A DNA stretch of 64,000 bases, taken from the NCBI GenBank assembly GCA_964247055.1, contig OZ176055.1, positions 7,316,001-7,380,000 of the forward strand, written 5' to 3'. Source of the stretch: Paragordius varius (lineage: Eukaryota > Animalia > Nematomorpha). Numbering within the stretch: the stretch's first letter is position 1; each line of letters starts with the position of its first letter. Of this stretch, positions 32,710 to 64,000 are shown piece by piece. The notes under the pieces are model-generated. The model saw only the letters and a program-made list of their open reading frames with translations. It was not told the DNA's origin and did no database searches. The translations under genes were made by a program, and so were the position numbers.

Positions 32710-33182
32710 ATGGCAGCACCCAAAATGAATTTGTATGCGATGTCCATTGGGATTATGATTATGTTGGCACTATTCCCTGAAGCAATAGGTAGGTACCCCA
32801 TAATTTTAAATTTACACAGCCCCACACCATTTATTAAAAGGGTGATTTTAAATAAAAAAATTTAAATGCATGCTATGAAGTTTAGGCAATGATAAAAAAT
32901 ATCATATGAAAATGTTAGTAGCATTTAACCTCGCACCTAATCTTCAAGATATAATTTAAATATGCCCTTGAATTCTTCACACTTTTATCTAGTGTATATT
33001 CGCGCAACAGTATCTACATTTCATCTTTAAAGGTGAGGTGCATGATTTAATTCAGGAATGTCCAGCACACTTTTTTCAAACGCAAAAATACCCCAAAAAA
33101 TGTTACTATGCTTTTTTTTCTTTCTTGAATTTTACCATACATCTATTCATTTTTTCTTTATCTCTAAAATATAAATGATATA

Positions 33183-33217
<35 letters not shown>

Positions 33218-36200
33218 TAGAACAGTGGTACTCACCAAAAAAATTTGACGGGCCAAATAAAATATATTTTTTTTAAGGGCCATGAACATTATTATGGCAA
33301 ATATTCGATAGCTATTTGAATATGCACATATATATACTCTAAATCAGCACAATGAATTAGTTGAGGAACGCATGTAAAGTCAGCTAAAAACTCGTTTTGC
33401 ACCATTTAGCTTAAAAAATTAAAATATTTTGATAACAACATTTATTTTGATATTAACCAATAATTTTTGACAAATTTGGTTTCGCCTCAAAACAGGCCAA
33501 TCTTACAGTCATGTCTATATAGAATTGTCAGAAATTCGTATTTAAATGATTATAATTTTTTTTTAATTGTTTTGATGTTTGATATGTCAACTTTCAACAT
33601 GCGAATTTTTAAGCCTTAATAATAATAGCCTATTTATTGTAAGAATTTTTAATTTATAATTAAATGTTGCAAAATATTATTCTTGAACGTTTTATCTACA
33701 ACATGCGCATGTAATTTATGATAACCAAGTTTGATATTTGTTTTCATTTTCTAGGGGTTTTTAACATGCACTTAAAATATAAACTAAACTCAAGCAGATG
33801 TCCATTTAATCTCTCTATATATATATATATATATAAAGAAATAAATCATAAATCTAGAGTTATTTTAAAAAATTATGAATATCAACGATAACCCATTATT
33901 TCTTCTTTGCTCGGCAGCTAGTGTACTTGAAGGTTTATATTAAAAAATAAAAATTCAGAACGAAATCCAATATTAAAGGAAAACATAGCTCCCTCAGTTT
34001 ATACTAAGTTCAATAATAGTTTGCGATAATGCACCTATTCACAAAGCCGCGGTGGTATGTGAGCTAAGGAATAAAATTGTTTATTTACCTCCATATTCGC
34101 CACAACTGAATCCCATTGAATGTTTTTTTCATGAGATTAAACATCAATATGATAAAATACCCCGGTGTAGTACCCCTCTAGAGCAGCATAACAAAATTGC
34201 AACACTTTGCTAAGAGAGGAGGGAAAAAAATCTAAAAAAATTTATAATTCTTCACATATTTTGTTGGAATGTATACAAAGAAAACCCCTAGAAAATGAAA
34301 ACAATTATAAATTTATTTAAATATTATAATTATCAAAAGATATTTTTATCTTTTAAATTATATTTTGGTTATGTGTGTTTAAACTCTGAGTTAATAAAAT
34401 TTTATAATTAATATTTTACAAAAGATAAAAATTACAATATGCGCATGTTGTGCATCAAGAATAATATTTTGCAATATCTTTTAATTATAAATTAAAAATT
34501 CTTACAATAAATAGGCTATTATTATTTTAAGGCTTAAAAATGCGCATGTTGAAAGTTGACATATCAAACATCAAAACAATTAAAAAAAAATTATAATCAT
34601 TTAAATACGAATTTCTGACAATTCTATATAGACATGACTGTAATAGGTCGTCCATATTATCCTCGGTTAAGCGATTTCTGTTCTTGACATACTTCATTTT
34701 TGAATATGCCGTTTCACACGTGCAATTTGAGGGAAAACAGTTAGGATAACTTGAGCACATTTTTTTATATTTTCATATCTATTTGGCACTTCTTGCGAAA
34801 ACTATACATATCTTTCTTTTCTACGATTTTCCTTAAATATACTTCCAAATTGGAATCATTTTTAAAATCTACGAATTCTTTAATGATATGCGCCTGATCA
34901 AAACCGAAATGCTCAAGTTGCTTAATATTGGATATATCCATATGCCATGTAAACGATTTTTAAGCAATTTTTAATATTTTTTAATTCTAGAAATCTTAAT
35001 TTCATCTCATTAGATATATTAAATTCTATTAAATTAATTTCCCCGCGGTAAATTCATATTTTCCTCATGATTAGTTTTAAGTGTTGGAAAGTATAGGAGT
35101 GTTTTATAAAATCTTGTTTAATTATTATTTTGACTTCAAAAGCAAATATTTGATTAGCTAGTTGGGTTTTTATTTTGCCTTACAGACTTGTATTAAAAAT
35201 AAGTTTATAAGTAATGTAGCAAGAGTAGGCTAATAAAATTCACTATTTGTCACTATTAATTTCTTCGTCAAACTTTCTGTTATCTTTTATAAAGAATAGA
35301 ATTTCATGTCTTAAAACAAAAAATCCATTTAATACTTAAAAATTAGCCATCTCACAGCGGTGTACAAAAGTAGATCATCAAACTCAGTGTGGAAATCCTT
35401 CAGAAGGTTTTTGAATTTACGGCGGTTGAATTCTCTGCCAAACAGGTAGTTTACTATATTTACAATCGTTTTAATTATTGAATTGAGTGAGTCCTTTTGC
35501 CCGCGAAACCAAGTTTTGCTGATGAATAAAGGAGTGAAAAAATATATATTTTGCAAATTATATTTGTTTTCAAAAGAGGAATAAATCCTTTGTTTATTCC
35601 AATATAGAGGGACAGCCATCTGCGCTGATCAAAACCATTTTTTTAGATATACTATTATTATCGAAAAATGTTTTAATTATTTCGAGAAAATTACTTCCTT
35701 TCGTGGTATTATTCATTAGTAAAAATTAATATTACTTGTAGATTATGTTGTTATTTCAAAATCTCACGAATAGCGCACATTGAGGTGTTGAACTAATATC
35801 GATGCTAAAATCAATAGCAATACTAAAATATGTGCAGTTTTTTAATGTATTGTTAAAAATATATTTAGAGACATATTTTCAAATGCGTCGAGCACATGTT
35901 GAATCAGAAAGTTGAAATTTTTTTTAATTTGCCTCATGATTTGATCTTTATTATGGAATTTATCTAAAAAAAGTGCAGGCATTTATTAGACATTCTTTTA
36001 ATAGTTGGAAATCAGTGAACGGTTTCATATTTTGTAGCAAGTTTTAAAGCTAATGTTACAGCTTTTTCCTGAGAGAAAGATATGGACATAATAGATTTTT
36101 CTTTCTGGTATAATTCCTTTTTTATATTGTTCGTTTCTTTCCTCATGATTTTCTGGTAATTTATGAGAACGATGGATTATAAATGTTTATTAATATTGTA

Positions 36201-39200
36201 TTTTTTACAAATATGTTGTCCTTACATATAAGGCAGGTAACAACATTTTTATTTAAAAAGTCAAAAAAAAAAATTTTCCCATATATAAAGGAGCGATTTT
36301 CATCGGATAATTAACGTTATTTGAATAACATTCTTTAAATTTATGTTTAAATATTACGTAATTTTTTTCAAAAATATATGATATAATATAAATTATGCTA
36401 GAAAAAAACAGGTCGAAATTTAATGATGTTGATTTTAAAAATATTTTATAGAATGAGTTATTAAAAATGATGCAGGATAACAATGAAAAGAATATGTATA
36501 TGCAATTTTGGGTGAAAGGCTTGTTTAAATACAAAAAAGGAAAATACAGAAACAGAAACAACGTGTGTCAAAGTTTTGAAATCCTTTTAATGTAGGGAAT
36601 TTTTATACATTTAAAATTGGGTATCTACCAAAATTAAATCTAAAGAAAATAAATAAATATTAAAATAAGCGAAAATTCGTTTATTGTATTTTAAATATTA
36701 ATAAAAAAAATAATTTAATTATCAATATGGTCATAGGGCAATTTTAAAACATTCTTAGGGCCATGCGGGCCGCGGTTTGAGTACCACTGGTCTAGAATCT
36801 CCCTTTTCCTTTTTTTTATTTAAGGGTAAAGATTTAAGAATCTGTAAAAGCTTACACTTGCCCACCCAGGGCTAACAAAGGTGATGGAAAATTCCACAGT
36901 TTTGAGATTCGAACTTTGACACTCCACACACACACAGAGTGTTAGAATTCGGTTCCCTACCTGTTATCTATCAGGAAAACTCTTTATAATATGGCTTTTC
37001 ACTGTTTATATTTGGCATGGATTCGTTTTATATTTTATCCCCATTATTTATTTATTTTTTTTACATTTTTTATAATGTATAGATGCTGCCGCTTGCGCTA
37101 ATTGCGTGTTTGGTGGAGTAACCACAGGCTGTTCACAGACTCGGAATTACACATTGACAAGATCATCTCAGGGTCAGTTTTATGTAGAGTTTATTAAATG
37201 GAAAAAATAGTATAACACGGCCGCCCACAAAAGTTTTTTTTATTAATTATACATCTTTTGATAACTAAAAATGTCAGGATATGGAATATCGAAATGATAA
37301 ATGCAGTTAGTATACTAAAAAATATTTTAAATTTTCTCCTATCAGCCACAATATATCGCACTTTTAACGTATATTAGGTCAAATTAAATTATAGATGAAA
37401 CCACGTTCGAATCCTATATGCTAATGTGTATCATAAAGACAATTTTAAACACTTTAAGCTTTATACATTATACCACAGAAGTTTTTAAATAAGTAATTCC
37501 TTTGCCATCTAAATTAACTCTAAAAACCTTGTTAATATGCGGTAAAAAAGTTTAAATGTTTAAATTAATTTTTTTACTAATTTACGCTAAAGCAAAAGTA
37601 GCGTACAATTCATAATACATATAATAATGCCGAAAAAACTATCGATTCAGCCTTTTAAATTTAACGGTTTTTAATGCCCAAAAACCATTATAAAGGCCCC
37701 AATAGCGTAAAATATTCATTGAAAGTTTTCGGATATAAAAATAAAACAAATCAAAACACTGAAATGAATTTAGCAACTAATATATATATTGGAGGCGTTG
37801 AATAATTATACGATATTCCGACTTAGGTGCAAAGCTAATTATCAAAATAAGTATTTACACAGTACCCATCGTAACACTTTCCACAAAAACATCGTGATGA
37901 GTCATATAGGTTATGATAAAAATATCTATTAAGATTTTCATGATACTAAGTATCTTAACAAAAATTCTACTTGTATGGAAATGGCCCACATATAGGAAAA
38001 TCAAAAGATTATATATTATGTCTAATGAAATTTTTTTTGGTGCTAATTTTTCATTTATGTTTACAGACATGTATACTTTATTTTATCAAAAATTTACTTT
38101 TTTTCGTTAAATGGGTGAAAATATTTGGTGAATGGAAAAACAAGAGCTTTATGGTATCAACCATATCATATTTATCGAAAAAGTAAAAGAAGTGTGGGGG
38201 AATGGCGTCGGAAATCTTTGATAAAAAAATGAAAATCTTAAAATATTTTTAAAGGGGAATGGTAATATTTTTGTTAATTTTTTAGCATTTTTTATTAATT
38301 TTTTTCGATAAAATTTTTATTTTTAACAAAAAATCGAAATGGATTGTGTAAAATATTCGGAATTAAATTTATTCACAAATTTATTTAAGAGAAATCTGAA
38401 TTGATAGAAACCATCAAATTATGTATAAAAAGTATTGTTAAAATTTTGAATTATTTTAAACTGTTTTATCATGCTTCTAGAGCACATAAACATTTTTAGT
38501 AGCTACAAATCAAAATAAGTTACTATTTAAGAATGTTTTGCTTTTCACATAGTATTTTGAATTACTTTTTTTGTAATAAACTGTTTAGTTTCTGCTAAAA
38601 AAATATTTGGCATTACTCGAGATATTTTATATTTTAAGCTTTTATATGATAAATAAAATAAAACCTACAATCATGCATAAACACAAGTTTATCAGCTCTA
38701 ATTTAGGTTTTTTAATACCTGAAAAAATTACATTTTAATCAATAAAAATTTCCGTTTACCAATTAGCGTTATGAGACGTACTAACATAAAATTCAGTTAT
38801 CAATTTTCTCTTTTGTTTTAAATTTACGACCAAATTGAATCTTGACTATATCTAAAAATAATTTTTCTAGGATTTTATCATCTTTATCATTTTGATATAC
38901 ATTAGCCTGTAGTTTTAACTTCTAGGAAACTTGGTTTTAAGCAGTTAGATACTTTGTTGTATGTATTGATTTTTGTTTGCTTTCAATTTATTGTAAAAAA
39001 AATGTAAAAGTAGTTTACTCAAATGCATTAGCCGATTCACTAATTGTCAAGCACAAATTAAAATGAGACAAAGATTAAAATTTCTAAAAATCAAGTATGA
39101 TTTAATTTATTTTTAATTACTATTTTAATGCGCGCAGCTTCAAACCCATTTAAAGGGCTTTGTGTGACCAGGGGAGCCCCCGGCACAATTGGAACTTGCT

Positions 39201-42200
39201 TTATAAATGTCTATTTCCCTGCCAATTATACCGTCAGTAAGTATTTAAAAAATATAATTTTCTTTAATAATGTGAGAAATAAAAAATACAAATTTTTCAT
39301 CGATATAAATTTTTATCAAGGCAAAAATCAGAAAAACCGCTTATTGTAAAAGAGAAAGATATGATTGATATTTTATAAACATAAAAATATATACAAGAAA
39401 CTAAGTTTATATTAAGCTAAGAATCAATCAAATTAAGGAATTGTATCGGGATTGTGCTTTTGGTTTTAGCCATTACGAGTGATTAAAAAAAGTTTAAACT
39501 TTTGTGGTAAGTGCTCCATATCAGAAAATAATGGCAAAATTTGCGCACATTTTTTAAATAAATTTTTTGATGAAGCTAAATGATTCATTCGAAAATCACT
39601 AAAATATATCATATCTAAATATTAAAATCAAAATATTTTTAAAAAAATCAATTTTTAGATATGGGATCCAAAAATTTCAAATTTTTTTGCTCCAAAATGT
39701 GCTATTAGCTTCATTCGAAAATTACTAAAATATATCATATCTATATATTAAAAGCAAAACAATATTTTAAAACAATTTTAGAAGTGGGCTCCGAAAATTT
39801 AAAATTTTTTTGCTTCAAAATATGCTAGGATGAAAATTTGATTATATGTTAAATTTTGATATCAACCAAAAATATTTTCTATGCATGCTTTTTTCAAAAA
39901 TTTAATTAGAAAAATTTTGTTACAGCGTACTCCATACTATTTTGAGGCATGAGGAAACGGTATAAAAGCGCTTTAAGATATTATAAAAACACTTTAATAT
40001 ATATAACATTTCTATCACCTCAGAATTTTGATTAAAATATTCATTCGTCTTAAAATTTATGTTAAATATAAATTAATTTTCAAAATTTCTCCCAAGTTTC
40101 TAAGCAAACGAACCTTTTATTATGAAGACAAAATAATGTTAAATACCATCGAATAATACAGAAAAAGTTTTATAATATCTTAAAACATTTTATACCGTTA
40201 CCACCATGCTTCAAAATACCATAAAAACGTTTCACCACTTGATATAAATTAAATTTTTGAGCAAAATATCTTTTTTTCGGATATTTTTTGGTCTCAAAAT
40301 TTAGCATATATTAATATTTATCACCCAGTCTCGGCGGTTTTGTGTTTATTTTGACAGAACTGGCCCATAAGAGCAAAAAAATCTGGTACTTTAAATTAAA
40401 ATTTATAAAAAATTATTTTGCTTTTTATATGTAATTCATAATATATATTAGTGATATTTTTTAGACGGAAGCATTTGGCTTTCACCAAAAAAATTTATTA
40501 AAAAATATGCGTAAATTTTGCCATTTTCTATTTAGAACACTTATTACAAAAATATAAATAACTTTCTGACATCCTTAGTAGGGGACAAAATTAAAAGCAT
40601 AATTATAATCCTGATACATTTTCCTATAACAATATATATTTTTTCTCAATATACTTTTTATACCCCCAATTTTGAACGCAGTGTTTAATCAATTGGGTTC
40701 TTTTGTTATTCGTAAACGGTTAAACATTTCTTTTGTTAATTTGGAATGCTTTAATAAAAACTATGGTCGGTTTAAATTTACGATTCGAATTGGGGTATCT
40801 AGTGACTACAGACCATATTTAAATTATAACATTAAAAAACAGCTGAAAGAGACGATTACAATTAAAATTTATTACTAACCTAATTAAATTATATGAATTA
40901 GCCAAAATATTAATAAAATAGCTTCGATACCTTTTTTAGATCACAACATTTTTGCAATATATCATCGTATTTTTGGATTCAAGCGCTAAATTTAAACTTT
41001 TTTTTCAATATTTTATCAAACATTAATGTAAACAGAAAAATGGTTGTTTATTTTGCATTATTATATTTAAATGATGCACACATGTCATGTTTTAATTTTT
41101 ACCATCATGTTTACCCATAAAAGTAACGTCAAGTTTTTTGAAAGTTTCTTTTTTGTATTTCCGTGCATTAATGTTACATAAATGCAAATTTTACAATGGA
41201 TTCATGCCATTTTGAGATATTTGGATTTAAACCGACCTGAGGTCATCACCAAAGGCCCTTATTTATATAAAATCACTAACTGTGTTTTATCAAAGTTTAA
41301 CAGTTTTGTTTTTCAAAATAAATTTAAATATTCAAATGAATTACTACTTTAAATGTATTTGTATCTATTTCGATCTTACCATATACGGAATAATTTATCT
41401 TTCAAAACGTTATCAACATTTGTTTGAAAGATGATAAATCAACTTCTTTAAATCACTGTTAGCAGAAGTTTTTGCTGTTAATGTGATCATTGATTTTCCA
41501 ACCAAAACATTTGCAAACTTAAAAATTTATCAACGTTTCTCCAACAAAACTTAACATATTCCCAATCAAACAACCCCTTACACTTATATATTGCTTTAAA
41601 ATAATATAATTCTTTGAAACGTTCAATTATAACTCCATTTTTAAAAAAAAATTGTTTCACTTTTTAACAATAGTTAACTTTAAATCATGGATAATTTAAT
41701 AATATAAAACTATCCAAGGTTAGTGTTCTTAAATACTATTAATAAAAAGAGTCTTTGGTTGATAAAGTGTTGTGTATAAATGTTAAAGCGTTAGATCATG
41801 TTTGAGAAAAAAATGAAAGCTTATTATTAATTCGAGTAAACTTTTCAAAAAAAACACATTTTTTATAGTGAAGTTATTTATTATTATGCGATTTATAAAT
41901 TCTCTTTCTATTTACAAAAGGCGCTATATTGACAACTGCAGCTGGAGCGGAGACAGAATTTGCCATTCCGACCACCGCTCCTCAGAATGGGGTTAATATT
42001 GTTGCAACCAATCCTCCAACGATTGGCGATCAAAGGGGATATCTTGTGAATAACATCCCCGACACTGTGGGAAATAGTGTGTGCTTTTGGGTATTTTTCA
42101 TACATACATATACATATATATATATATATATATAGTGGTATTTGGGTTCAAAAATTTAATTTAGTCATTTGAGTTTTGGATAAATAAATTCCACTGGATA

Positions 42201-43961
42201 TCTATTTTGCATAAAATTTTAATTCAAAAAGCTCACCACATTCATCTTATATTTTATTAAAACTTGGATGAACGCATTCATTTTAGTCCTTCGATTCAAA
42301 TTGGGGTAGTTGGATACCCCCGGCCTGTTTAAAATTAAATTCTTTAAAAAAAAGGAATAACCATGGCAAAATATTGCACTTATATAACATTAATACACCA
42401 AAATTTATAAAAATTTTTATTCAAAAATACTTGATATCACTTATTTTAACACTTGGATACAACACACTCATTTTAGTCCTTCGATTCAAATTGGGGTAGT
42501 TGGATACCCCAGGCCTGTTTAAAATAAAATTCTTTAATAAATATAGAAGGAATCAAAACCATGCCAAATTTTGCACTTATCTAACATTAATAAACCGAAA
42601 TATATAAAAAAATTTATTTTAAAATACTTAATATTACTTATTTTAAGCTAAAACCGAAAGGTAAAAATTTCGTCACCGTGGCATGTGTCAAATTGTAAAA
42701 TTGAAAAATTATACAAACTAAACCGCTTTTTCTATTCTATCAATGTTAGATGTAATTTATATAAAAAATTAGCTTTAGTTTCACCCTTAAAATTAAATAA
42801 AGACGATATTTTGCAAAAATTTTGTGAAATAAAAATGGCGTCGAAATAGTTTGAGATTGAGCTTTTTTTTCAAAACAAAATTTTATCAAGTTTTGGCATA
42901 TTTATATAATATTTATCAGGATAGAAGCATAAATTTAAATTGAGACCGTTTCCTTCAGTAGTTTTTTAAAAATATTAATTTAAATTTAGTCCCAAATTGA
43001 ATCGAAGTGTTAGGCTAAAACCGAAAGGTAAAAATTTCGTCAACGTGACATATGTGAAATGGTAAAATTAAAATATAATACAAAATAAACCGCTTTTTCT
43101 ATTTCTATCAATGTTAGATGTGATTTAAATAAAAAATTAGCTTTAATTTTACCCTTAAAATTAAATGAAGACGATATTTTGCAAATATTTTGTAATAAAA
43201 ATGGCGTCGAAGTAGTTTGACATGGAACTTTTTTTTCAAAACAAATTTATATTTATATATTTTGGCATATTTATATAATTTATGTTAGGATAGAAGCATA
43301 AATTAAGATTGGGACCGTTTCTTTAAATAGTTTTCTAAAAACCCTAACTTAAATTTAGTCTGCGGTATTTAGATCCAATTTGAAGCTAAGTGTTAAAAAC
43401 ATATGATTTTACCAGTCGGTACCTGAGATGAAAAAATAAAATAGTGCTCTAAAATTTAGATTTATATATATATATATATATATTAAAATAAGGTTTATAA
43501 TTAGCAAATTTTAAATGTAATGTTATCTGATTCTATAATCAAAAGATTATGAGGCTATGCGCAATAACTAATATCAATTATACGGAATTGTTGCTTTAGC
43601 ACACACAAATAAATCTATTAAAATTATATTAAATATCTGATTTTTCATTCTCGCTCTACTTTGTAAATGTCGAAGCTTAACAAATCACTGACTATAATTT
43701 ATTTATTTACTAACATGTTTGATTCCAAAAATATTTTATATGGTAAATTCCCAAAAAACAGCTGGCATCGTGAACCACAAATTTCTTTAACAAAAAATGC
43801 GAAAATTAAAAAAACATATAAATTAACTAATAAATCATTATGAAACTTATTATATGTATAAATTTAATGTTTAAAGTTTACCTTCTTTCGTACATTAGAT
43901 AAATATCCCTGGAAATGTTGGGATTATACCATATACTGGTGGTAGAGGACCCCATCCTTAA
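32710..43961 (+). CDS. Uncharacterised secreted Cys-containing protein, paralog A (166 aa)
   Basis: join(32710..32788,37083..37172,39138..39236,41921..42090,43899..43961) = 501 nt, GT-AG introns, phases 1,1,1,0. MAAPKMNLYAMSIGIMIMLALFPEAIDAAACANCVFGGVTTGCSQTRNYTLTRSSQASNPFKGLCVTRGAPGTIGTCFINVYFPANYTVSAILTTAAGAETEFAIPTTAPQNGVNIVATNPPTIGDQRGYLVNNIPDTVGNSVCFWINIPGNVGIIPYTGGRGPHP*. Identical exon lengths and phases in paralog B support the model. Confidence 0.85.
33223..36789 (-). mobile_element. hAT element of Buster/Charlie type (GTF2IRD2/EPM2AIP1-like transposase relic) in intron 1 of paralog A
   Basis: TIRs CAGTGGTACTCA / TGAGTACCACTG. TSD TTCTAGAA / GTCTAGAA matches the nTCTAGAn preference of this group. 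Relics IVNIVNYLFGREFNRRKF...LLLYTAVRWL and CETAYSKMKYVK...RLTEDNMDDLL. Empty site (GTCTAG) in unit B at ~51348. Confidence 0.9.
33506..34640 (+). mobile_element. Tc1/IS630-like element with ~200-bp TIRs nested in the hAT
   Basis: TA|CAGTCATGTCTATATAG...CTATATAGACATGACTG|TA. Internal DDE relic VCDNAPIHKA...VYLPPYSPQLNPIECFF (~34020-34130). Removing it restores the host frame DDLLRLACFEAKPNLS. Confidence 0.88.
36808..36975 (-). mobile_element. Probable tRNA-derived SINE, antisense in intron 1 of paralog A (homolog ~51356-51505 in B)
   Basis: On the minus strand: an A-box-like TAG..AACAGGTAG, a B-box-like GTTCGAATC (GTTCGAACT in B), a unique body, then AATAAA running into an A-rich tail. No intact cloverleaf. 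Confidence 0.55.
42258..43396. mobile_element. TTAA-flanked (piggyBac-type) non-autonomous element with internal tandem duplications, specific to unit A
   Basis: TTAACACTTGGATAC (42446) ... AAGTGTTAA (43396). Repeated ~190-bp and ~365-bp blocks. Absent at the homologous position in unit B (~61910). Related sequence at ~52960-53460 and 54056-54596. Confidence 0.5.
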
Positions 43962-44295
43962 ACAAACATAGGGTGGAATGTTGTTTCTATTCTATTTACT
44001 TTATTGATATAATATAGTAATTAAATTAACAAATGCACACTGTATTAAATACAAATTAGTATAATTTTTAAATTTATAAATTTTAATGTAGTTCAATTTA
44101 TTATCTGGCACGGGGCATATTTATTATCTATTCATATTTCATAGATTTAACACATTTCGACAAAATGGGGGTCATAAATAAATGTTTTGAATTGTATATC
44201 ATTCAATAGCTGAACGCTGCATATAAATGAATATCGAAATAATTTATTCGGTTAAAATACTAGATAGCCCAAAACAAAAATCGTTTCATACTGGA

Positions 44296-46263: not shown

Positions 46264-46678
46264 GGCTTTGTGATCTGGTACAGGAAAACCAGTAGACCCA
46301 TTTAAATCCAAACATCGAAAAAATATAATCATTAATGAATGCCCCGACAATAGCTTCGCCCTTTTTTTAAAATAGGCCCCCAGTTCGGGCCTATGTAAAA
46401 AACAGGTTAAGACAATTTTCCGGAGAACGTGTTGGTGCATTCAATTTTAAATATGATTTTTGTTTATATTTTTGATCGCGCCGAACATAGTCGTCTCGCT
46501 TTTTTAATTTAGGCCCACTTTTTACCCGATCCCCCCGTAAAATTCTATTTTTTTCAAAAAACAAAATCCACATAAATAATATTTTAAATCTATTTTTCGC
46601 CCTAAGTATGAGACCGTAAAAATTCAATATGGATTCCACGTATTCCATGTTAAAATAAGTCAAGCGTTTCTTTGCTGA
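46264..46678 (+). mobile_element. Truncated Helitron-like fragment
   Basis: Matches the 5' interior of copies 3 and 4 (GGCTTTGTGATCTGGTACAGGAAAACC...) but lacks both termini. Confidence 0.75.
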
Positions 46679-46747
46679 GTAAGGAATATCTATCATATGT
46701 ATAGGATGTTAAAAAAATATATGGAAATAAAACACTATTTATGGTAA

Positions 46748-47802
46748 TCTATATATTTATAAGAATGGAAAATGCTAGTTTTGTGATTTGGTACAGGAAA
46801 ACCGGTAGACCCATTCAAATCCAAATATCGAAAAAATATAATCATTAATGAATGCCCCGACAATACCTTCGCCCTTTTTTAAAAATAGGCCCCCAGTTCG
46901 GGCCCACCCCGTGTGAAAAACGGTTTTTTTAAAAAAGTCCACAAAAATTGTGTCTTTGAGACAATTTTCTGGAGAGCGTGTTAGACCATTCAATTTCAAA
47001 TATGATTTTTGTTTTTTTTCGATCGCGCCGAACATAGTCGTTCGCTTTTTTAATTTAGGCCCTCTTTTAACCCGCTCCCCCCGTAAAATGCCATTTTTTT
47101 CAAAAAACAAAGTCCACAAAAATAATTTTTTAAATGTATTTTTCGCCCTAGGTATGAGACCGTAAAAAATCAATATGGATTCCACGTATACCCTGTTAAA
47201 AGGCAAAAATTTTAGTCAAGCGTTTCTTTGATGATTATAGCTGCCGGGTAAAGAGATACCCACTAAAATCTAATTTCTCATGTAATTTTGTGATCTGTTC
47301 CGGAAAGCCGTTGAACCCAATCAAATCCAAATATGGAAAAAATATAATCATTTATAAATGTCCCGACCATAGCTTCGCCCTTTTTTGAAATTAGGTCCCC
47401 ATGACGGGCCTACCCCGTGTAAAAAACAGGTTGAGACATTTTTCCGGAGACCGTGTTGGACCTTCAATTTCAAATATGATTTTTGTTTACTTATTTTTGA
47501 TCGCGCTGAACATAGTCGACTCACTTTTTTGATATACGTCCTCTTTTTACCCGTTACCCCAGTAAAATGCCATTTTTTCAAAAAACAAAGTCCACAAAAA
47601 TAATTTTTTAAATCCATTTTCCCCCCAAGTAATTAATATATTAGTCTGAATGCACCGTTTTAAAATTTCTATAAAATCATATTTAAATAATGTTTCGAAA
47701 TAATCCACATATGTGGATCATTTTATTGTCCTTTATTTGAAATAGCATCCCCCTCCACAAGTCCGAAGGACTTCCTCATGCTGCTAAGCAGATTCACGCT
47801 AG
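46748..47802 (+). mobile_element. Non-autonomous Helitron-like element (copy 4) nested in the hAT
   Basis: A|TCTATATATTTATAAGAATGG at 46748. Ends AAGTCCGAAGGACTT...CACG-CTAG|T at 47802. Confidence 0.85.
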
Positions 47803-50700: not shown

Positions 50701-53700
50701 ATGGCAACATCCAAAATGAATTTGTATGCAATGTCCATTGGGATTATGATTATGTTGGCACTATTCCCTGAAGCAACAGGTAGGTACCCCATAATTTTAA
50801 ATTTACACAGCCATATTTTTATTAAAACGGTTTTATTAAATGCATACTATGAAGTTAAGCAATATTAAAAAATATTATTTGAAAGTTGTTAGTACCATTT
50901 AACCTCGCACCTAAACTTCAAGATATAATTTAAATATGCCTTCTAATTTTTCACAATATTTTGTGTATATTGCCAATACAATATCCACATTTCATCTTTA
51001 AGGTCGAGGTGCATGGTTCAATGCAGGGATGTCCAGCACGCTTTTTTCCTCAAAAATACCCTAAAAATGTTAAAAATATATAAAAATATATTTCTATCAA
51101 AATTTACGATTATGAAGAAGATATATCATCTAAAATTGAGCCCAAAATAAACTTATAAACCCAAAATCAAAACAGTTTCGAAGATATTTGTGTTGGACTC
51201 CCCTGCTTTAAGGCAAGTAAATTATATATCATAAATGCGTTACCACCCAACATTGTAATATGTTTTTCTTGGAATTGTACCATATTTCTATTTATTTTTT
51301 CTTTATCTCTAAAAATAAATAATATTAATGATATATATATATTTATAGTCTAGTCCTTTTTTTATTTAAGGGTAAAGATTTAAGGATCTGTAAAAGCTTA
51401 CATTTGCCCACCCAGGGCTGACAAAGGTGATGGAAAAATTCCAAAGTTTTGAAGTTCGAACGTTGGCAGTATTAGAGTTCGGTTCCCTACCTGCTATTCA
51501 GGAAAATTCTTTATAATATGGCTTTTCACTGCTTATATTTGGCATGGATTCGTTTTATATTTTAACTCCAATATATAATTTTTTTACATTTTTTATAATG
51601 TATAGATGCTGCCGCTTGCGCTAATTGCGTGTTTGGTGGAGTAACCACAGGCTGTTCACAGACTCGGAATTACTCATTGACTAGAGCTTTTCAGGGTATG
51701 TTTTTGTAGAGTTTGTTCAGAGATTTATTAAATGGAAAAAAATAGTGTAACACGGCCGCCCACAAAAGTTTTTTTTTATTAATTATACATCTTTTGATAA
51801 CTAAAAATGTCAGGATATGGAATAACGAAATGATAAATGCAGTCAGGATACTAAAATAATATTTTAAATTTTCTCCTATCAGCCACAATATATCGCACTT
51901 TTAACGTATATTAGGTCAAATTAAATTATATATGAAACCACGTTTAAATCCTATATGCTAATGTGTATCATAAAGACAATATTCAACACAAAATGTTTTT
52001 AAACTTTATACATTATACCATAGAAGTTTTTAAATAAGTAATTACTTTGCCGTCTAAATTAACTCTAAAAACCTTGTGATTATGCGGTAAAAAAACTTAA
52101 TATTTAAAATAATTTTTTTACTAATTTACGCTAAAGCAAAAGTAGCGTACAATTCATAATACATATAATAATGCCGAAAAAACTATCGACTCAGCCTTTT
52201 AAATTTAACGGTTTTTAATGCCCAAAAACTATTATAAAGGCCCCAATAGCGTAAAATATTCAATGAAAGTTTTCGGATATAAAAATAAAACAAATCAAAA
52301 CACTAAAATGAATTTAGCAACTAATATATATATTGGAGGCGTTTAATAATTATACGATACTCCGACTTAGGTGCAAAGCTAATTATCAAAATAAGTATTT
52401 ACACAGTACCCTTCGTAACACTTTTCACAAAAACATCGTCATAAGTCATATAGGTTATGATAAAAATATCTATTAAGATTTTCATAATACTAAGGATTTT
52501 AACAAAAATTTTACTTGTATGGAAATGGCCCACATATAGGAAAAAAAGATCATGATGCCTAATGAATTTTTTTTCGTGCTATCCATTTATGTTTAAATTA
52601 AAATATATTATAAACTAGATATAAATAGTAATAAAATATTTATAGTAAACATTTGTTATGATATGTCAGAGCTAAAAGCTTCAAATACTTACAGTCATGT
52701 AGACTTTATTGTGTTAAAGGTTTACTTTTTTTCGTTAATTGGGTATTAATATTTGGTAAAGAATATAAAAACAAGAGCTATATGGTATACCATATCATAT
52801 TCTTTAAAAAAGTAAAAGAAGTGTAGGGGAAGGGCGCCGGAAATCTTTGGTAACAAATGAAAATACACTAACTCTTACTTCACTTAAAATTATTGTATAA
52901 AAGGGTTAGGAAAATCGTAATTTTTATCTCAATTATAATTTTTTTTGTTTTGATATGGGAACGATTTAAAATATGCTATATTAAATAATCATAAAATTAA
53001 ATTCTTTAAAAAATATATCAAAACCATTGTAAAATTTTCCACTTTTATAAGAAACATAAATATATAAAAAATTTATTCAAAAATACTTGATGTTAGTTAT
53101 TTTAAGCTGACAAATGGTAAAAATTTAGTCAACGTGACCTGTGTAATACAAATAAACCGCTTTATCTATTTCTATCAATGTAAGTATAATTTAAATAAAA
53201 AATTAAATTTAATTTTACCCTTAACACTTAATGAAGACGATATTTAGCAAATATTTTGTAAAATAAAAATGGTGTCGAAGTTGTTTCACATGTAACTTTT
53301 TTCAAAACCAAATTTTATTTAGATATTTTGGCATATTTATGCAATTTTTATTAGGAAAGAAGCATAAATTTAAATTGGGACCGTTTCTTACACTAGTTTA
53401 TTAAAAATATTAACTCAAATTTTGTCTGGGGTATATTTGGATACCCCATTTTAGGTGTTAAATAATTTTATCAAAAAAATTAATATATAAAATTTGGCAA
53501 AAAATTAACAAAAATATTACCATTCCCCTTTAACAATATTAATTTTCATTTTTTACCAAAGATTTCTGACGCCCTTTCCCCACACTTCTTTTAATTTTTT
53601 AAAGAATATGATATGGTATACCATATAGCTCTTGTTTTTATATTCTTTACCAAATATTAATACCCAATTAACGAAAAAAAGTAAATCTTTAACACAATAA

Positions 53701-56700
53701 AGTCTACATGACTGTATTTTTATTTTCGTAAAATAAGCTAAAGACTTGATGCGCCATAATAATTTCTAATGTTTGCTGGAGCATGATGTTAAAAATCGTT
53801 TTAAAATTTAATTTTTGGCTATATACTGGTGAAGATTATTTATGGTATAGAAAACAGTATGAAAACACTTTTGATAACCCTTAACACCTCAAAATTATAA
53901 TTTAAAAAAGTTTTTTCAAATCGAAATGGATTTTTTAAAATATTTGGAATTAAATTCATTCAAGACAAATTTATTTAGGAGAAATCTGACATGATAGAAA
54001 CGAGCATCATCAAATTACGTATAAAAAGTAATGTTAATATTTTAAATTATTTTAATTGGATACAACACATTCATTTTAATCCTTCTATTCAAATTGGGGT
54101 AGTATAATTTAAAAAATATGGAATGAATTGAAACCTTGGCAAAAATTTGCGCATTTATTACATTAATGAACCGAAATATATAAAAAATTTCATTCAAAAA
54201 TACTTGATATTACATATTTTTAACTAAAACCTCAAGGTAAAAATTTAGTCAACGTTACATGTTTGCCTTAGCTAAATTTAAAAATAATACAAAGTAAACC
54301 ATTTATTCTTTTTCTATCAATGTTGGATGTGATTTAAAAAAAATAGCTTTAATTTTAGCTATATCAAATAAACACTATATTTTGCAAAAATGTTGTAAAA
54401 TAAAAATGGCGCCGAAGTAGTTTGATATGGAACTTTTTTTCAAAACCAAATTTTATTTAGACATTCCGGCTTATTTATATAATTTGGTTGATAGAAGCAT
54501 AAATTTATATTGGGACCATTTCTTTCAGTAGTTTTTTAAAAAAATAAATTTAAATATAGTCTGGGATATTCAGATACCCCAATTTGAATCGAAGTGTTAA
54601 ACTGTTTTTATCATGCTTGTCGAGCACATAGACTATTTTTAGATACTACAAATCAAAATAAGTTACTATTTAATAATGTTTTGCTTGTCACATAATATTT
54701 TGAACTAATTTTGTAATAAACTGTTTAGTTTCCGCTAAATAAATATTTGGCATTACTCGAGATATTTTATATTTTAAGCTTTTATTAACGGGGTAATAGA
54801 AAATTTATGATAAATAAAATAAAACCTACAATCATGCATAAACACAAATTTATCAGCTCTAATTTAGGTTTTTTAATGATCTGAAAAAATACATTTTAAT
54901 CAGTAGTAATTTCCGTTTACCAGGTAGCGTTATGAGTAAGGTGACCAGACGTCCCGCTTTTTCACACTTTGTCCCGCGTCCCGTTACGGTTTTGAAATGT
55001 CCCGCTTTTTCACGATCATAAAAAAAATGTTTTTTGAAATACATTTTAATATAAAAATTTATTTTTTTATCCGTTTTAACTTTTTATAATTTTATCTTTT
55101 ATATCTATATCAATTTTAAATTAAAATTTTTTAAAATTAAAAATATTTATTTTTTTCGAATTTAAATCATATGATTATACACTTTGTTCCTACTCCTACT
55201 GCAACATTATCAAAAAGACAAATTAATACCACAAATCGGTAGCTTATTTACTCCAGAAAATTAAGGTAATATAATATTTTTTATACTAATATTAGTAGTA
55301 TGAGTATAAAAGAGGTTGTAAATTCAACGATGAATTAATAAAAGAATCTCCTTTTATCAAAAAAACGAAGAATAAATCATTTTTAAATGTTCTTTGTGCT
55401 GGGGGAATTCACATAGCACATGTCGGCAAGCATGATATTACAAAGCATATGGAAGCACAGTAACATAAAAAATATTTAGATATGGCGGAATCCTCTTACA
55501 AAATGAAGAATTTTTATCGAAAAACCGCTTTTGGAGAGGAAGAAAAGAATTTGGCACTACCCGAAGCGTTTTATCTTTCCACGCCGTTAATCACAATCTA
55601 TCCTTTAGATCTATGGATTTTACCTCACAGGTTATTCGTACCCTATTCAAAAAAAATTATGTGTGCCCGTACAAAAGCTAAAGCCTTTGTATGCAATGTC
55701 CTTTCGCCACATGCGTTTGCTCAAATACAAAAAGATTTGCTGAAAATCAATTTCATATCACTATACTCTGCATATCACAAGGAAACAAAATTATTTCCCA
55801 CTTTAATAAGATATTTTGATCCAACCGGAGTAAAAATTAAAATTTTCGATTTTTTCTCTACCCGGTAAAAATTCCGACATAATTTATACTTCAATAATAA
55901 ACATTCTAGAAAAAACAATTTAAAAGACAAAAACATCGCATATTGCGCTGACAACACCAATACGAACTTCGGTGGAAAAGCAAGGAGGGAAACGAAAAAT
56001 ATTTTTCATAAATTAGCAGATAATCTTAATCAAAACATTATTGGCGTTGGGTGTGCAGCGTATATAATACACAACACTATTCAAACAGCCGCGGATTTGT
56101 AATGCCTAGATGTGAAAAATGTAGTTGTTAAAATTATATATACACGGTACGCTTTGAAACGCTCAAGGAATTCTGTGAAAATGCAGAAGTTCAATATCAA
56201 AAAATGCTTGGATTAAAACTCGTTGGTTAGCTCTGCCAGCTATCTAAAGAATTTTAAAAATGTATGATCCTTTTAAATCTTTTTTTATCACAGGACAAAT
56301 GTCCTACAACTATAAAAAAGTTTTTTGAAAGTGATTCTTTAAAAATAGGTTAGAATTCTTAATCAAGCTTCTCTCTTTCAAAATATTATTAAATTTATAA
56401 AAGGTGACAAAATTTCGGCAATCGAAGTAGCCAATGAAGTTAGTAACCTAAAATTCCAATGTCTTATAAGATTATTTAGAAGCGATTTAATGAAATTGCT
56501 CATTTTTATTGGATAACATTAAAACCAAAATTTAATTGGTGCGATGTTCAAAAATCATTTGATTACATCTGCATCTCCCAAAAATTCCCAACACGTAATC
56601 TTTCAGAAAATGATTTTTTTTCTTAAGTATCATTAGTTAAAAAATATTAATAATGAAAAACTTAAATTATGGACAACTGAAAAAAATACAGTAGAAAAGA

Positions 56701-59700
56701 AATGGCTAGAAATATTTCATCATTTTGAACAAAACTATGTTCCACACAATAATATTTTAAAAAGGCACTATCTTTACCTGGGACCAACACTGCTAATGAG
56801 CGTGTTTTTTTCCATAGTGTATCAGGTGTGGACATCGGTCAAATTTAAATGTTGAAACTTTAAAGGCCATTTTATCTGTCAAATATAACTTGACAAATTC
56901 TTGTGAAGACTTCAACAATATTTTAAAAAAGATGACAATCTGCTAAACGCAAATCAAATAAAAAATATACCAAAAAATGAAATATTTTTTTATATTTATA
57001 ATCTATTTGTTTTAAAAATAAATCAATATTACAATAAATTTTTGCTTAAAAATCTTTGGTTGTACACCCTCTCCCATGCCCTTCCCCCTTCTCTTTGTCC
57101 CGCTTTTTCGTTCAAAAAATCTGGTCACCTTAGTTATGAGACGTATTAACATAAAATTTAGTTATCAATTTTCTCTTTTGTTTTAAATTATCGACCAAAT
57201 TGAATCTTGACTATATCTGAAAATAATTTTTCTAGAATTTTATCATCTTTATCATTTTGATATACATTAGCCTGTAGTTTTAGCTTCTAGAAAACTTGGT
57301 TTTAAGCAGTTAGATACTTTGTTGTATGTATTGATTTTTGTTTGCTTTCAATTTATTGTAAAAAAACGTAAAAGTAGTTTAACTCTAAAATGCATTAGCC
57401 GATTCGCTAATTGTCAAGCACAAATTTAAAATGATACAAAGATTAAAAATTTTAAAAACGAAGTATGATTTAATTAATTTTTAATTTCTATTTTAATGCG
57501 CAGGTTCAAACCCATTTGAAGGGCTTTGTGTGTACAGGAGAGCCGCGGGCGTAGTTGGACCTTGCTTTATAAATGTCTATTTCCCTGCCATTTATAACAT
57601 CAGTAAGTATTTAATAAATATAACTTCTTTAATAATATGAGAATTTAGAAAATGCAAATTTATCGATATAAAAATAGTTATCAAGGCAAAAATCGAAAAA
57701 CCGTTTGATTATATGTAAATTAAAATCATGTCATGATTTATAAATATAAAAATATATATAAGAAACCAAATATTTATGTTATAGCTAAGAATCAATAAAA
57801 TTAAGGGAATGTATCAGGATTGGGCTTTTGGTTTACGCCCTTACGGTTGATTAAAAAACGTTTAAACTTTTGTGGTAAGTGCTCCATATCAGAAAATAAT
57901 GTCAAAATTTACGCACATTTTTTTAAATAAATTTTTTTGATGAAGCTAAATGCTTCATTCGAAAATGCTAAAATATAACATATCTAAATATTAAAAGCAA
58001 AACAATATTAAAATAAAATCAATTTTTAGATGTAGGCTATAAAAATTTCAAATTTTTTTGCTCCAAATGTGCTAGGATGATAATTTGATTATATGCTAAA
58101 TTTTGATATCAATCAAAATTTTCTATGCATGATTTTTCAAAAATTTAACTAGAAAAATTTTGTTAAAGCGTACTCCATACTATTTTGAGGCATGAGGAAC
58201 GATATAAAAACGTTTTCTATATAAAACATTTCTATCACCTCAGAATCTTTATTTTATATTCCTTCGCCTTAAAATTTATGTTAAATACAAATCTTTTTTT
58301 ACGAAATTTCTCCCAAGTTTCCAAGCAAACAATTATGAAGACAAAGTAATGTTCAATTATCTTGAATGATAAAGAAAAAGTGTTTTTATAATATCTTAAA
58401 ACATTTTATACCGTTACCACCAAGCAAATACCATAAAAACGCTTCACCACTTGATATAAATTAAATTTTTGAGCAAAATTATTTTTTTCGGATATTTTTG
58501 GTCTCAAAATTTAGCATATATTAAAAATATTTATCACGCAGTCTCGGCGGTTTTGTGTTTATTGACAGAAATGGCCCATAAGAGCAAAAAATTTGGTACT
58601 TTAGGAGCGGGAAATTAAAATTTATATGAAATTATTTTGCTTTTTATATGTAATTTATGATATATTTTATTGATATTTTTTTTGAATGAAGCATTTGGCC
58701 TTCACCAAAAAAATTTATAAAATATGCGCAAATTTTGCCATTTTCGATATAGAACACTCACCACACAAATGTAAATAACTTTCTAACATCCTTCGTAGGG
58801 GACAAAATTAAAAGCATAATTATAATCCTGATACATTTTCCTATAAAATATATATTTTCTCAGGATACTTGTTTATACCCCCAATTTTGAACGCAGTGTT
58901 TATCAATTGGGTTCTTTTGTTATTCGTAAACGGTTAAACATTTGTTTTGTTAATTTGGAATGCTTTAATAAAAACTAACATTTCGAATCGAATTAGGGTA
59001 TGTGACTCCCCATATTTAAATTTTATACATGAAAAAGTGCTGAAAGAGACGAATACAATTAAAATCTATTACTAACCTAATTAAATTATATGAATTAGCT
59101 AAAATATTAATAAAATTTGGTATTGAAAACCATATAGAAGCTTCGATACCTTTTTTATATCACAACATTTTTTCAGGATATCATCGTATTTTTGGATTCA
59201 AGTGCGCTCAATTTAAACTTATTTATTAAAATCTTATCAAACATTAAGATAAATAGAAAAATGATTTATTTTGCATTATTTTATATTTAAGTGCAAACAT
59301 GTCATGTGTTAATTTTTACCATCATGTTTACCCATAAAAGTAACGTCAAGTTTTTTGAAAGTTTCTTTTTTTGTATTTCCGTGCATCAATGTTACATAAG
59401 TGCAAAATTTTACAATTAATCCATGCCATTTTGAGATATTTCAATTTAAACCGGCCTAAGGTCATCATCCAAGGCCCTTATTATTTAAATAAAATGACTA
59501 AATGTGTTGTATCCAAGTTTAAGCGTTTTTGTTTTTCAATAAATATTTAAATATTCAAATGAATTTAAAAACTACTTCAAATTCATATTTTTTTGCTATT
59601 TTGATTTTATCATTTATGGAATAATTTATCTAGACGTTCCAAACGTTATCAACATTTGTTTTTAAGTTGATAAATGATCTTCTTTAAGTCACTGTTAGCA

Positions 59701-60546
59701 GAAGTTTTTGCTGTTGATGTGATTATTTTAAATATTCCAATAACATTTTCAAAACTTTAATAGTAATTAAACTCGCAAAACTCAAATTCCCAATCAAACA
59801 CACTTTTACATTTGATAAATTGCGTTAAAATAATAGCTAAATTTAATAAGCATGTATGATCACTTATTACTCCATTTTTTTTGTAAAAATTGTCAATTGC
59901 TTAAGTAGTTACTCTCGAACCATAGTTAAATTTATATCATGCATGGATAACGTAATAATAAAACTATCCAAGATTAGTGTTGATAAATACTATACCAATT
60001 ACAGTTCAAATTCACCCTTGAACAATCCAAATTCACCCTCGAATTCAAATTCACCCTAGAACAATTCAAATTCACCCTAAAATAATTATTTACTGAAAAT
60101 AATAAACTATGGCATAAGGAATATTACATATTAATAATGAGTTATATTCGCCCAAAAACAATTAATTATTTTTAGGGTGAATTTGAACCGTAAATGGACT
60201 GTTAAAGAGTCTTATAAATGAATAAGCTCATAAAATCGTGTTTAGTTATTAATTGAAAATGAAAGCTTTTTTATGTTAATTCGGCTAAACTTTTCAAAAA
60301 ACACATTTTATATCGTGAAGTGTGAGAATGCATTAGATTTATAAATTCTCTCTCTATTTTCAAAAGCGGGTATATTGATACCTGCAGCGGGAGTAAAGAA
60401 AAATTTTACCGTTCCGACAACGGCTCCTCAGGATGGGGTTAATATTGTTGCAACCAATCCTCCAACAATTGGCGATCAAAGGGGATATCTTGTGAATAAC
60501 ATCCCCGACACTGTGGGAAATAGTGTGTGCTTTCTGGTATTTTTTC

Positions 60547-60596
<50 letters not shown>

Positions 60597-62501
60597 TGTG
60601 TGCAAAAAAGGGTCATTTTGATTTACGAAAAATGTTTTTATGAGATAGCTTATGACCAGCTTATTCATTTGCCGAAAAAAATTTTATTTGTTGACAACCT
60701 AGTTTTTGAAATATTGAGAGAAAATCGAAATCGGGCAAAAAGAAAATTAAGAATAATTATGGATAATTCAAAAAATAATGTTAAAATTTGAAATATTATG
60801 GTTTATTATCATTTTAGGAGATAATAGCCTAAAATCATATAGTTTGTGTTTCTATATTTCAGGTCAAAAGATGGCGTTTTTCTTTTATCACACTTAAAGA
60901 CAAAATAAATTAATGAAACTATATTAAAATATTTTTTCAATTATTTACTACCTAAACTCAATATTAAAATCTCATTCATATTTTATTCAGTAAAATAAAC
61001 TTTTATATCAAAATAACCAAAAATATTGTTTTTATTTTTGAATTTTTTTGTCATCTGGTTTATTAGTGTATTAAAAATTTATACTGTTTTATTTTGGGTT
61101 CTCACATGATGACGAATTATTAAGTATATAATTTATGCAAAATAGGATATAAAAGTAGTGGAATATCAACCAACACATACAATTTCCTGTAACATCTGTT
61201 TTATAACAAATTAATATTTGTATTGGGATTTGTACGGATTGTTGGTTGATATTCCACTTTCATAAATTATATACTTAATAATTCCTAATCATGTGAGAAT
61301 CCAAAATAAAACAGTATAAGTTTTTCATACACCCATAAACCAGATGACAAAAAAATGCAAAAATAAAAAAATATTTTTGGTTTTATTTTGATATAGAAGT
61401 TTATTTTACTGAATAAAATATGAATGTTAAGACTTTATATTGAGTTTAGGAAGTAAATATAATATAGTTTCATTAAATTTATTTTAAGGATAAAAGAAAA
61501 ACGCTATCTTTTGACCTGAAATTTTATAGAAAAAAAACTATATGATTTTAGGCTATTTATATAATGAAATTATCTCCTAAAATGATAAATAATCATAATA
61601 TTTCAGATTTTATCATTATTTTTTGAATTATCCTTAATTATCCTCGATTTTCACTTTCTGCCCGATTTCGATTTTCTTTCAATATTTCAAAAACTAGGTA
61701 GTCAACAAATAAAAATTTTTTCGGCAAAGGAAATCGCTGGTCATAAGCTATCTCATTAAAAAAAATTTTTTTGTTAAAAATTTTTTTGTACACAGTGTAT
61801 ATAGTGGTAAAATTTGGGTTCAAAAATGTGATTTTGTCATTTTGGTTATGTATATTAAATATTATTCATTTTCTTAAAGTTTTAACTTATAAGTTCACAC
61901 AACTTTATTCAAAAACATATGATTTATTCGGTACCTGAGGTGTATATATAAAATAAAGCGCTAAATTTTAAATCTATAGTTTAAAATTAAAATAAGGTTT
62001 ATAATTAGCAAAATATAAATGTAATGTTATCTAATTTTATAATTAAAAAATTATGAGGCTATGCCCAAAAACCAATTGTTTCATTTATACAAAATTGTTG
62101 CCTTAGCATACACAAATTTTTATTAATTAAAATTATATTTTAAATATCTGATTTTCCATTCTCGCTTTACTTTGTAAATGTCGAACCTTAATAAATCACT
62201 GACTTAAAATTTATCTATTTACTAATATGTTTGATTACAAAAATATTTTATATGGGAAATTCCCAAAAACAGCTAACATCGTGAACCACAAATTTTTCTG
62301 ATTGTGAAGATTGGTGACATCCTTTAATAAAAAATGCGAAAATTAAAAAAAAACCATATTTTAAATTAACAAATAATCATTATTTTTTAATATATGTATA
62401 AATTTGATTTTTAAAATTAACCTTCTTTCTTACATTAGATTACGATCCCTGAAAATGTTGGGATTATTAAATATTTTGGTGGTTACGGACCCCATCCATA
62501 A
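50701..62501 (+). CDS. Uncharacterised secreted Cys-containing protein, paralog B (166 aa)
   Basis: join(50701..50779,51606..51695,57504..57602,60367..60536,62439..62501). MATSKMNLYAMSIGIMIMLALFPEATDAAACANCVFGGVTTGCSQTRNYSLTRAFQGSNPFEGLCVYRRAAGVVGPCFINVYFPAIYNITGILIPAAGVKKNFTVPTTAPQDGVNIVATNPPTIGDQRGYLVNNIPDTVGNSVCFLITIPENVGIIKYFGGYGPHP*. No indels or stops relative to A. All six Cys kept. Confidence 0.85.
52692..53714. mobile_element. Non-autonomous Tc1-like element with long (~230-270 bp) TIRs
   Basis: TA|CAGTCATGTAGACTTTATTGTG...CACAATAAAGTCTACATGACTG|TA. Only the left arm survives in unit A (from 38064). Confidence 0.78.
54056..54596. mobile_element. TTAA-target MITE specific to unit B
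   Basis: TTAA on both sides (54052-55, 54597-600). A single TTAA at the homologous site in A (~38456). Same family as 42258-43396. Confidence 0.7.
54937..57132 (+). mobile_element. hAT element with Blackjack-like termini, specific to unit B (intron 2)
   Basis: TIRs TAAGGTGACCAGA / TCTGGTCACCTTA with a perfect 8-bp TSD GTTATGAG. A single GTTATGAG in unit A at 38768-38775. Broken transposase ORFs (55482..55868 and downstream, DNTNTNFGG, GCAAYIIHN). Confidence 0.92.
59993..60199. mobile_element. 21-bp-repeat MITE (copy 4, asymmetric) in intron 3 of paralog B
   Basis: TA|TACCAATTACAGTTCAAATTCACC...GGGTGAATTTGAACCGTAAATGG. Absent from the homologous site in A (~41735). Confidence 0.8.
60594..61797. 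mobile_element. ~1.2-kb foldback (palindromic) element with TA flanks in the last intron of paralog B
   Basis: TA|CATTGTGTGCAAAAAA...TTTTTTGTACACAGTG|TA. The arms are complementary almost to the centre (GTGGAATATCAACCAACA ~61160 / TGTTGGTTGATATTCCAC ~61245). Inserted in a (TA)n tract that is uninterrupted in A (42113-42134). Confidence 0.85.
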
Positions 62502-63866: not shown

Positions 63867-63902
<36 letters not shown>

Positions 63903-64000
63903 AGATATTTTATGCAGGCCGCAGCTTAGTGCCATCCTATTTTTTTTAATATCCAGTAATATTATTTGCACAGTTTACTCCAATAACATCGTAACTTATC

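Follow-up and report, generated by a model that had tools for sequence, protein, structure and literature searches.

A tandem pair of candidate secreted six-cysteine protein genes in the horsehair worm Paragordius varius

Secreted six-cysteine proteins and the Paragordius varius gene pair

Horsehair worms are known as parasites that manipulate their insect host, and to our knowledge the secreted molecules of their phylum are almost unknown. Here we describe two genes, A and B, that lie in tandem in the Paragordius varius (Nematomorpha) assembly GCA_964247055.1 (110.6 Mb), within a stretch of 64,000 nucleotides (nt) of contig OZ176055.1 (positions 7,316,001 to 7,380,000, forward strand) that we call the window and along which all coordinates below are counted. 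Three described systems come closest to this locus: orphan secreted cysteine proteins of parasites (excretory/secretory, effector-type), ML (MD-2-related lipid-recognition) domain proteins, of which NPC2 and Der p 2 are examples, and the classic six-cysteine odorant-binding proteins of insects. With the orphan parasite proteins, A and B have in common a short pre-protein, a leader exon followed by a phase-1 intron, few conserved cysteines on what looks like a fixed scaffold, local tandem duplication, fast and patchy amino acid (aa) divergence and no homologues found beyond the lineage. This likeness is one of analogy, not homology; A and B differ in that there are two copies only and no large expansion. 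ML-domain proteins are likewise secreted single domains of ~130-150 aa with six cysteines, the first and last of which are near the ends of the mature chain; however, the cysteine spacing of A and B differs from theirs, and no Pfam match to the ML domain, NPC2 or Der p 2 is found in the exons that were scanned. Insect odorant-binding proteins are also small, secreted and often tandemly duplicated, but they are all-helical with another fixed cysteine spacing, whereas G, T, N, P, V and I abound in the A and B products, which give no Pfam match.

From the evidence set out below, we find that A and B are most likely two real, intact, tandemly duplicated protein-coding genes that selection appears to keep intact, and that together they probably form a taxon-restricted pair of secreted-protein genes. 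A six-frame scan of the window finds the C-x2-C-x8-C motif twice, at 37094 and 51617, and a GPHP-stop twice, at 43947 and 62487, all on the + strand. Exons 1, 2 and 5 were set by reading the sequence, and exons 3 and 4 by listing all open AG..GT pairs; among all such combinations, only one choice of exons 3 and 4 has homologous positions and equal sizes in both copies. In the resulting models gene A occupies 32710-43961 and gene B occupies 50701-62501, both on the + strand and each with five exons of 79, 90, 99, 170 and 63 nt (stop codon included) separated by introns of phases 1, 1, 1 and 0. The preliminary description of this DNA had proposed two five-exon genes with identical exon sizes, encoding 166-aa proteins with a leader, a shared cysteine pattern and a GPHP end, and the models that we rebuilt from the sequence agree with it.

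In gene A, exon 1 (32710..32788, +, 79 nt) carries the start codon and the signal-like leader and ends in phase 1 at an exonic G followed by the donor gtaggt; exon 2 (37083..37172, +, 90 nt) encodes C31-x2-C34-x8-C43 and the sequon NYT at residue 48; exon 3 (39138..39236, +, 99 nt) encodes the C65-x11-C77 loop, whose residues are the most divergent between the copies; exon 4 (41921..42090, +, 170 nt) is variable over its first third and then encodes a near-invariant core, aa 107-144, up to C144; and exon 5 (43899..43961, +, 60 nt plus TAA) encodes a variable tail and the GPHP end. The corresponding exons of gene B are at 50701..50779, 51606..51695, 57504..57602, 60367..60536 and, with the stop codon, 62439..62501, all on the + strand. 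Introns 1 to 4 measure 4294, 1965, 2684 and 1808 nt in gene A and 826, 5808, 2764 and 1902 nt in gene B. Splice dinucleotides are AG/GT at 16 of 16 sites in the two genes, with donors near consensus (gtaggt, gtcagt/gtatgt, gtaagt and gtattt) and acceptors that all end in ag, and there is an in-frame stop 16 codons 5' of the ATG in both copies. The window is AT-rich, with a guanine-plus-cytosine (GC) content of 27.6% and animal-type GT-AG introns. All ten exons are GC islands, with a GC content of 0.37-0.49 vs 0.20-0.30 in their flanks (0.49 vs 0.28 for exon 2 of gene A); 170-nt windows that reach 0.45 make up 0.36% of the whole 64 kb.

Both products are 166 aa long, with cysteines at 31, 34, 43, 65, 77 and 144 (C-x2-C-x8-C ... 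C-x11-C ... C) and GPHP at the C-terminus. The sole strongly hydrophobic stretch is at aa 11-22, with K5 upstream and a peak 11-aa Kyte-Doolittle hydropathy of 2.57 at aa 12-22; the next-best value elsewhere in the proteins is 1.55-2.0. I/T-D-A ahead of A29 fits the -3/-1 rule and predicts cleavage before A29. By these two measures both proteins have a classical signal peptide, in line with the signal-like leader that had been described, and neither protein has a second hydrophobic span or a glycosylphosphatidylinositol-type tail, the GPHP end being polar. Exon 1 codes for little more than the leader, and the phase-1 intron comes next; a leader exon with a phase-1 intron is the usual layout of secreted-protein genes. 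The predicted mature chain is ~138 aa (14.2-14.5 kDa, isoelectric point 8.3-8.6), with G, T, N, P, V, I and A as abundant residues; N-glycosylation sequons are at N48 and N86 in A and at N48, N88 and N102 in B.

Two repeat-like features of the proteins were looked at. The first, an internal duplication of exons 2 and 3 suggested by C-V-x..G-x-C ... NYT in both, was rejected: BLASTP returns no alignment and the best ungapped self-matches are not above those of shuffled sequence (P 0.24-0.31). The second is a motif, P-x(0,1)-[TN]-[IV]-G, that occurs at aa 71, 121/122, 136 and 150 of both proteins (exons 3-5), with the last three copies spaced 14 aa apart across the exon 4/5 junction. Its count was never matched in 20000 shuffles, for a motif that was picked post hoc and with a pairwise self-alignment that is not significant.

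Copy number and relatives

To see how many copies exist, we searched the worm's own genome with single exons and found that exons 1-4 each match exactly two sites, A and B, at an expect value (E) of up to 10. A search for additional paralogs had been proposed, and for these four exons it yields none beyond the pair. All relatives were sought exon by exon, with a longest query of 56 aa, so that the power of these searches is limited and below the sensitivity of a whole-protein search. In Pfam-A, no family reaches its gathering threshold with exons 2-4 of A and exons 3-4 of B at E ≤ 10, which bears out the earlier statement that no domain can be recognized, and exons 3 and 4 are without any match at that setting. 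The word-index protein search with the open frame around exon 4 of B (eligible proteins of 81-259 aa) gives no match, the Atlas gives no usable match to the exon-wise query, and metagenome contigs and prokaryotic genome contigs contain no relative of the exon queries. With an exon-4 profile, HMMER finds no credible relative among 1.84 billion representative proteins; the sole match, P0001, which is the translation of a DNA repeat and aligns in eight stretches, was set aside as an artefact. In the PDB, exons 2 and 3 are without a match and exon 4 retrieves only two designed six-fold propellers (SAKe6). A Kelch-type beta-propeller was rejected as a candidate: the score adds up identical designed repeats with no single stretch that passes, the match spans query residues 12-30 only, and a propeller would need a longer protein. 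We also rejected DUF3716, which matches 16 residues of exon 2 through the CxxC motif at 18.1 bits, below the cutoff of 22.

These blank exon-wise searches partly show that the family is limited to its lineage at the sequence level, with exactly two members in the genome. The preliminary description had called the family lineage-specific; this holds for the single-exon queries, and it would not hold if A and B were remote members of a known fold. Such a reading, in which the family is not new and its products are very divergent members of a secreted fold or family already described (for example a lectin, a protease inhibitor or a beta-sandwich domain that binds lipids or ligands), recognizable only through a full-length structure or profile-profile comparison, is the strongest competitor, and we consider it a possibility of some substance, though well short of the favored one. 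It is helped by the low search power, by the predicted fold of exon 4 by itself, which is uninformative (predicted local distance difference test score, pLDDT, 43.7), and by the general experience that fast-evolving secreted parasite proteins often prove to have known folds. It is weakened by the Pfam blanks for exons 3 and 4, by the nature of the sole matches, which are summed-repeat artefacts and the sub-threshold CxxC match, and by a cysteine spacing that resembles neither ML-domain proteins nor insect odorant-binding proteins.

Constraint and divergence between the copies

To ask how the two copies have diverged, we compared the coding sequences of A and B with the aligned non-coding DNA of the duplicated unit. 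The proteins differ at 34 of 166 aa, which confirms on recount the number given earlier, and the coding sequences differ at 56 of 501 nt (11.2%). The non-coding DNA has 562 mismatches in 5275 nt (10.65%) and 92 indel events, or 1.74 per 100 nt. At the non-coding indel rate, 8.7 indels would be expected in the 501 coding nt and none is found (P ~1.6e-4), which argues that the reading frames of A and B are under constraint. Replacement changes are also depleted in part of the protein: in aa 1-56 together with aa 107-144, nonsynonymous changes affect 7 of 215 sites vs 562 of 5275 non-coding positions (Fisher P 1.4e-4), and in the core, aa 107-144, the proportion of nonsynonymous differences (pN) is 0.012 and that of synonymous differences (pS) is 0.107, the latter being at the neutral level. 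The earlier claim that the pair is maintained in duplicate is thus supported both by constraint on the frame and by constraint on part of the protein. Past the stop codon, ~190 nt (43962-44150 vs 62502-62700) are ~95% identical between the copies, whereas the last coding exon is 78% identical; this segment, with an ATTAAA 59 nt past the stop of gene A, is likely a constrained 3' untranslated region.

Several observations weigh against the view that A and B are real genes kept by selection. Between A and B, the overall ratio of nonsynonymous to synonymous rates (dN/dS) is ~1.0, and the first, second and third codon positions account for 22/18/16 of the differences, with no third-position excess. 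When substitutions were simulated at random, the frame stayed open in 20% of trials and all six cysteines were retained in 16%. The low divergence around exon 2 is not confined to the exon: the block 36811-38063 vs 51357-52595, which covers exon 2 plus the initial 900 nt of intron 2, shows 2.7-9% divergence compared to 10-15% elsewhere, and since it reaches into the adjacent intron, gene conversion may contribute there; either a conversion tract or conservation of the intron sequence could account for the block. In addition, the call of a signal peptide is based on hydropathy and the -3/-1 rule instead of a trained predictor, and that of the genes on DNA sequence.

Some of these observations also fit an alternative in which the frames are non-functional, belonging to a recent duplicate that is untranscribed or decaying and was kept open by chance and gene conversion: coding divergence equals non-coding divergence, an open frame would survive random substitution fairly often, and the divergence is patchy along the unit in a way that is compatible with conversion tracts. 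The preliminary description had noted that frames, splice sites and cysteines are intact in both genes, and this is what we see (16 of 16 splice dinucleotides, no coding indels and six cysteines in each). Taken alone, the retained cysteines and splice dinucleotides are weak evidence for real genes. Set beside the missing indels, the depletion of replacement changes in a core where synonymous changes run at the neutral rate and the GC islands at the exons of both copies, they make the non-functional alternative improbable.

The 34 replacements are concentrated in three stretches of the protein, which are the C65-C77 loop, aa 84-105 and aa 145-161. In the loop, 6 of 11 residues and 9 of 33 nt differ. 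The segment aa 84-105 contains a charge reversal (A-E-T-E vs V-K-K-N) and a moved sequon, and the segment aa 145-161 is encoded in exon 5. Between these last two segments there is a single difference in 37 residues, at 112, which is N in A and D in B. Over aa 57-106, pN is 0.217 and pS is 0.094, a ratio of 2.3 that rests on only 3.5 synonymous changes (binomial P 0.14). Divergence over aa 57-106 exceeds the unit-wide non-coding rate (Fisher P 0.001), but compared to the immediate 150-nt flanks there is no significant excess, the flank divergence of 0.10-0.22 being inflated by misaligned indels. In this comparison of two copies without an outgroup, the variable segments may reflect either diversifying selection or relaxed constraint.

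The duplication, its surroundings and a possible role

The duplicated unit is larger than the genes. Unit A (32472..44264, +) contains gene A with ~240 nt upstream and ~300 nt downstream, and unit B (50510..62817, +) is its colinear partner; blastn aligns the two in colinear blocks of 82-90% identity in which the introns are homologous too, giving a duplication of ~12 kb. Exons, introns and flanks are colinear on one contig and the exon-intron structure is identical, as in a tandem segmental duplicate. Between the units is a spacer of 6.2 kb. That the units are two haplotypes of one locus laid in tandem by the assembly, a reading for which the tandem arrangement alone speaks, is very improbable given the 10.65% non-coding divergence and 92 indel events, the kilobase-size transposon insertions that differ between the copies and the spacer that parts them on one contig, so that the earlier view of A and B as paralogs holds.

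The introns have taken up transposons independently, as had been proposed, and the inserts are copy-specific dispersed genomic repeats. Intron 1 of gene A carries a 3.6-kb insert of dispersed repeats (33216..36810) that is lacking in gene B and of which 33220-36800 has 135 genomic matches among the matches listed. Its outer part is an older repeat of ~2.3 kb, ~82% identical to at least 20 copies, and nested within this is a 1.14-kb element (~33500-34645) with inverted ends of ~215 nt. Other genomic copies of the outer repeat run unbroken where the inner element sits in A. The inner element is 94-99% identical to its other copies, with a 99% copy on contig C3; based on these identities, it is probably a non-autonomous DNA transposon that was active recently. 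In gene B, intron 2 carries a 2.2-kb dispersed repeat (54937..57132), of which 54940-57130 has 264 genomic matches; three of these are full-length at 92-95% and many are partial. Because each insert is missing from the other copy, the simplest reading is that these insertions postdate the duplication. The outer ~2.3-kb repeat in A looks older than the divergence of A and B, so for this repeat a loss from B, or homogenizing conversion between A and B, is a conceivable alternative.

Other shared sequence lies within and around the two units. Just upstream of exon 2, at 36811-37082 in A and 51357-51605 in B, there is a shared GC-richer segment with tRNA-like box motifs (GGTTCGAAC-like). We rejected it as an extra exon and regard it as a shared non-coding segment; Rfam gives no match for it, and it looks like a short interspersed (SINE-type) element inserted before the duplication. 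(TA)n microsatellites begin ~10 nt past the exon 4 donor in both copies (42100-42134 and 60547-60597), and a further one is found downstream of gene B (63865-63912). A unit of ~510 nt is present once upstream of A (30003-30568) and in approximately three tandem copies in the spacer (46266-47803), with 77-87% identity; it could stem from the original duplication or belong to a repeat family.

Farther out, the next 10 kb downstream offer no usable conserved exon for synteny, and upstream the closest conserved gene stops over 10 kb short of the pair. At 18768-22357 (+) there are several exon-like open reading frames (ORFs) with motifs that resemble those of folylpolyglutamate synthase (Mur-ligase type), for which Pfam is blank on single exons. 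On the - strand, an exon-like ORF at 14195-14449 resembles the OB-fold of the replication protein A 32-kDa subunit, again without a Pfam match. Four ORFs in a row at 23542-24821 (+) have the appearance of a decayed hAT-type transposase and give a weak, below-threshold match to DUF659 (E 1.8e-4). Tandem repeats of 21/42 nt are found at 14507-14612 and 14780-14859, in opposite orientations and ~170 nt apart, and their repeat unit recurs at 11393-11760; possibly they mark where a mobile element ends.

If A and B are the secreted-protein genes that we favor, the properties of their predicted products suggest how these might work. Each product would be secreted co-translationally as an extracellular protein of ~14 kDa, probably N-glycosylated and cross-linked by up to three disulfides, in a chain that is poor in helix-forming residues. 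A fixed scaffold, conserved between the copies, would comprise the six cysteines, the C-x2-C-x8-C segment near the N-terminus and the core (aa 107-144). More speculatively, the C65-C77 loop, aa 84-105 and aa 145-161 could be an exposed variable surface on this scaffold, through which the paralogs might bind different extracellular partners, maybe at the worm-host or worm-environment interface. By this inference the product would be an extracellular binding or surface protein whose paralogs may have different specificities. The preliminary description had suggested an effector, an adhesive or cuticular component, or a recognition protein as possible roles. A bolder version, in which A and B are a hairworm-specific secreted family with a fold not seen before, and in which the disulfide-bounded C65-C77 loop and the two other surface segments are under diversifying selection because the protein binds molecules of the insect host, or of a mate or the environment, is doubtful on present evidence; if it were true, A and B would be candidates for a factor at the interface of parasite and host.

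Orphan secreted gene pairs are common in animal and parasite genomes, and in that sense A and B are ordinary objects that open no long-standing question. If they are expressed, however, the pair would add to the thin molecular catalogue of horsehair worms a family that is invisible to homology-based annotation, and its conserved scaffold with variable loops would mark it as a specific candidate, open to experiment, for an extracellular protein that acts in recognition or at an interface.

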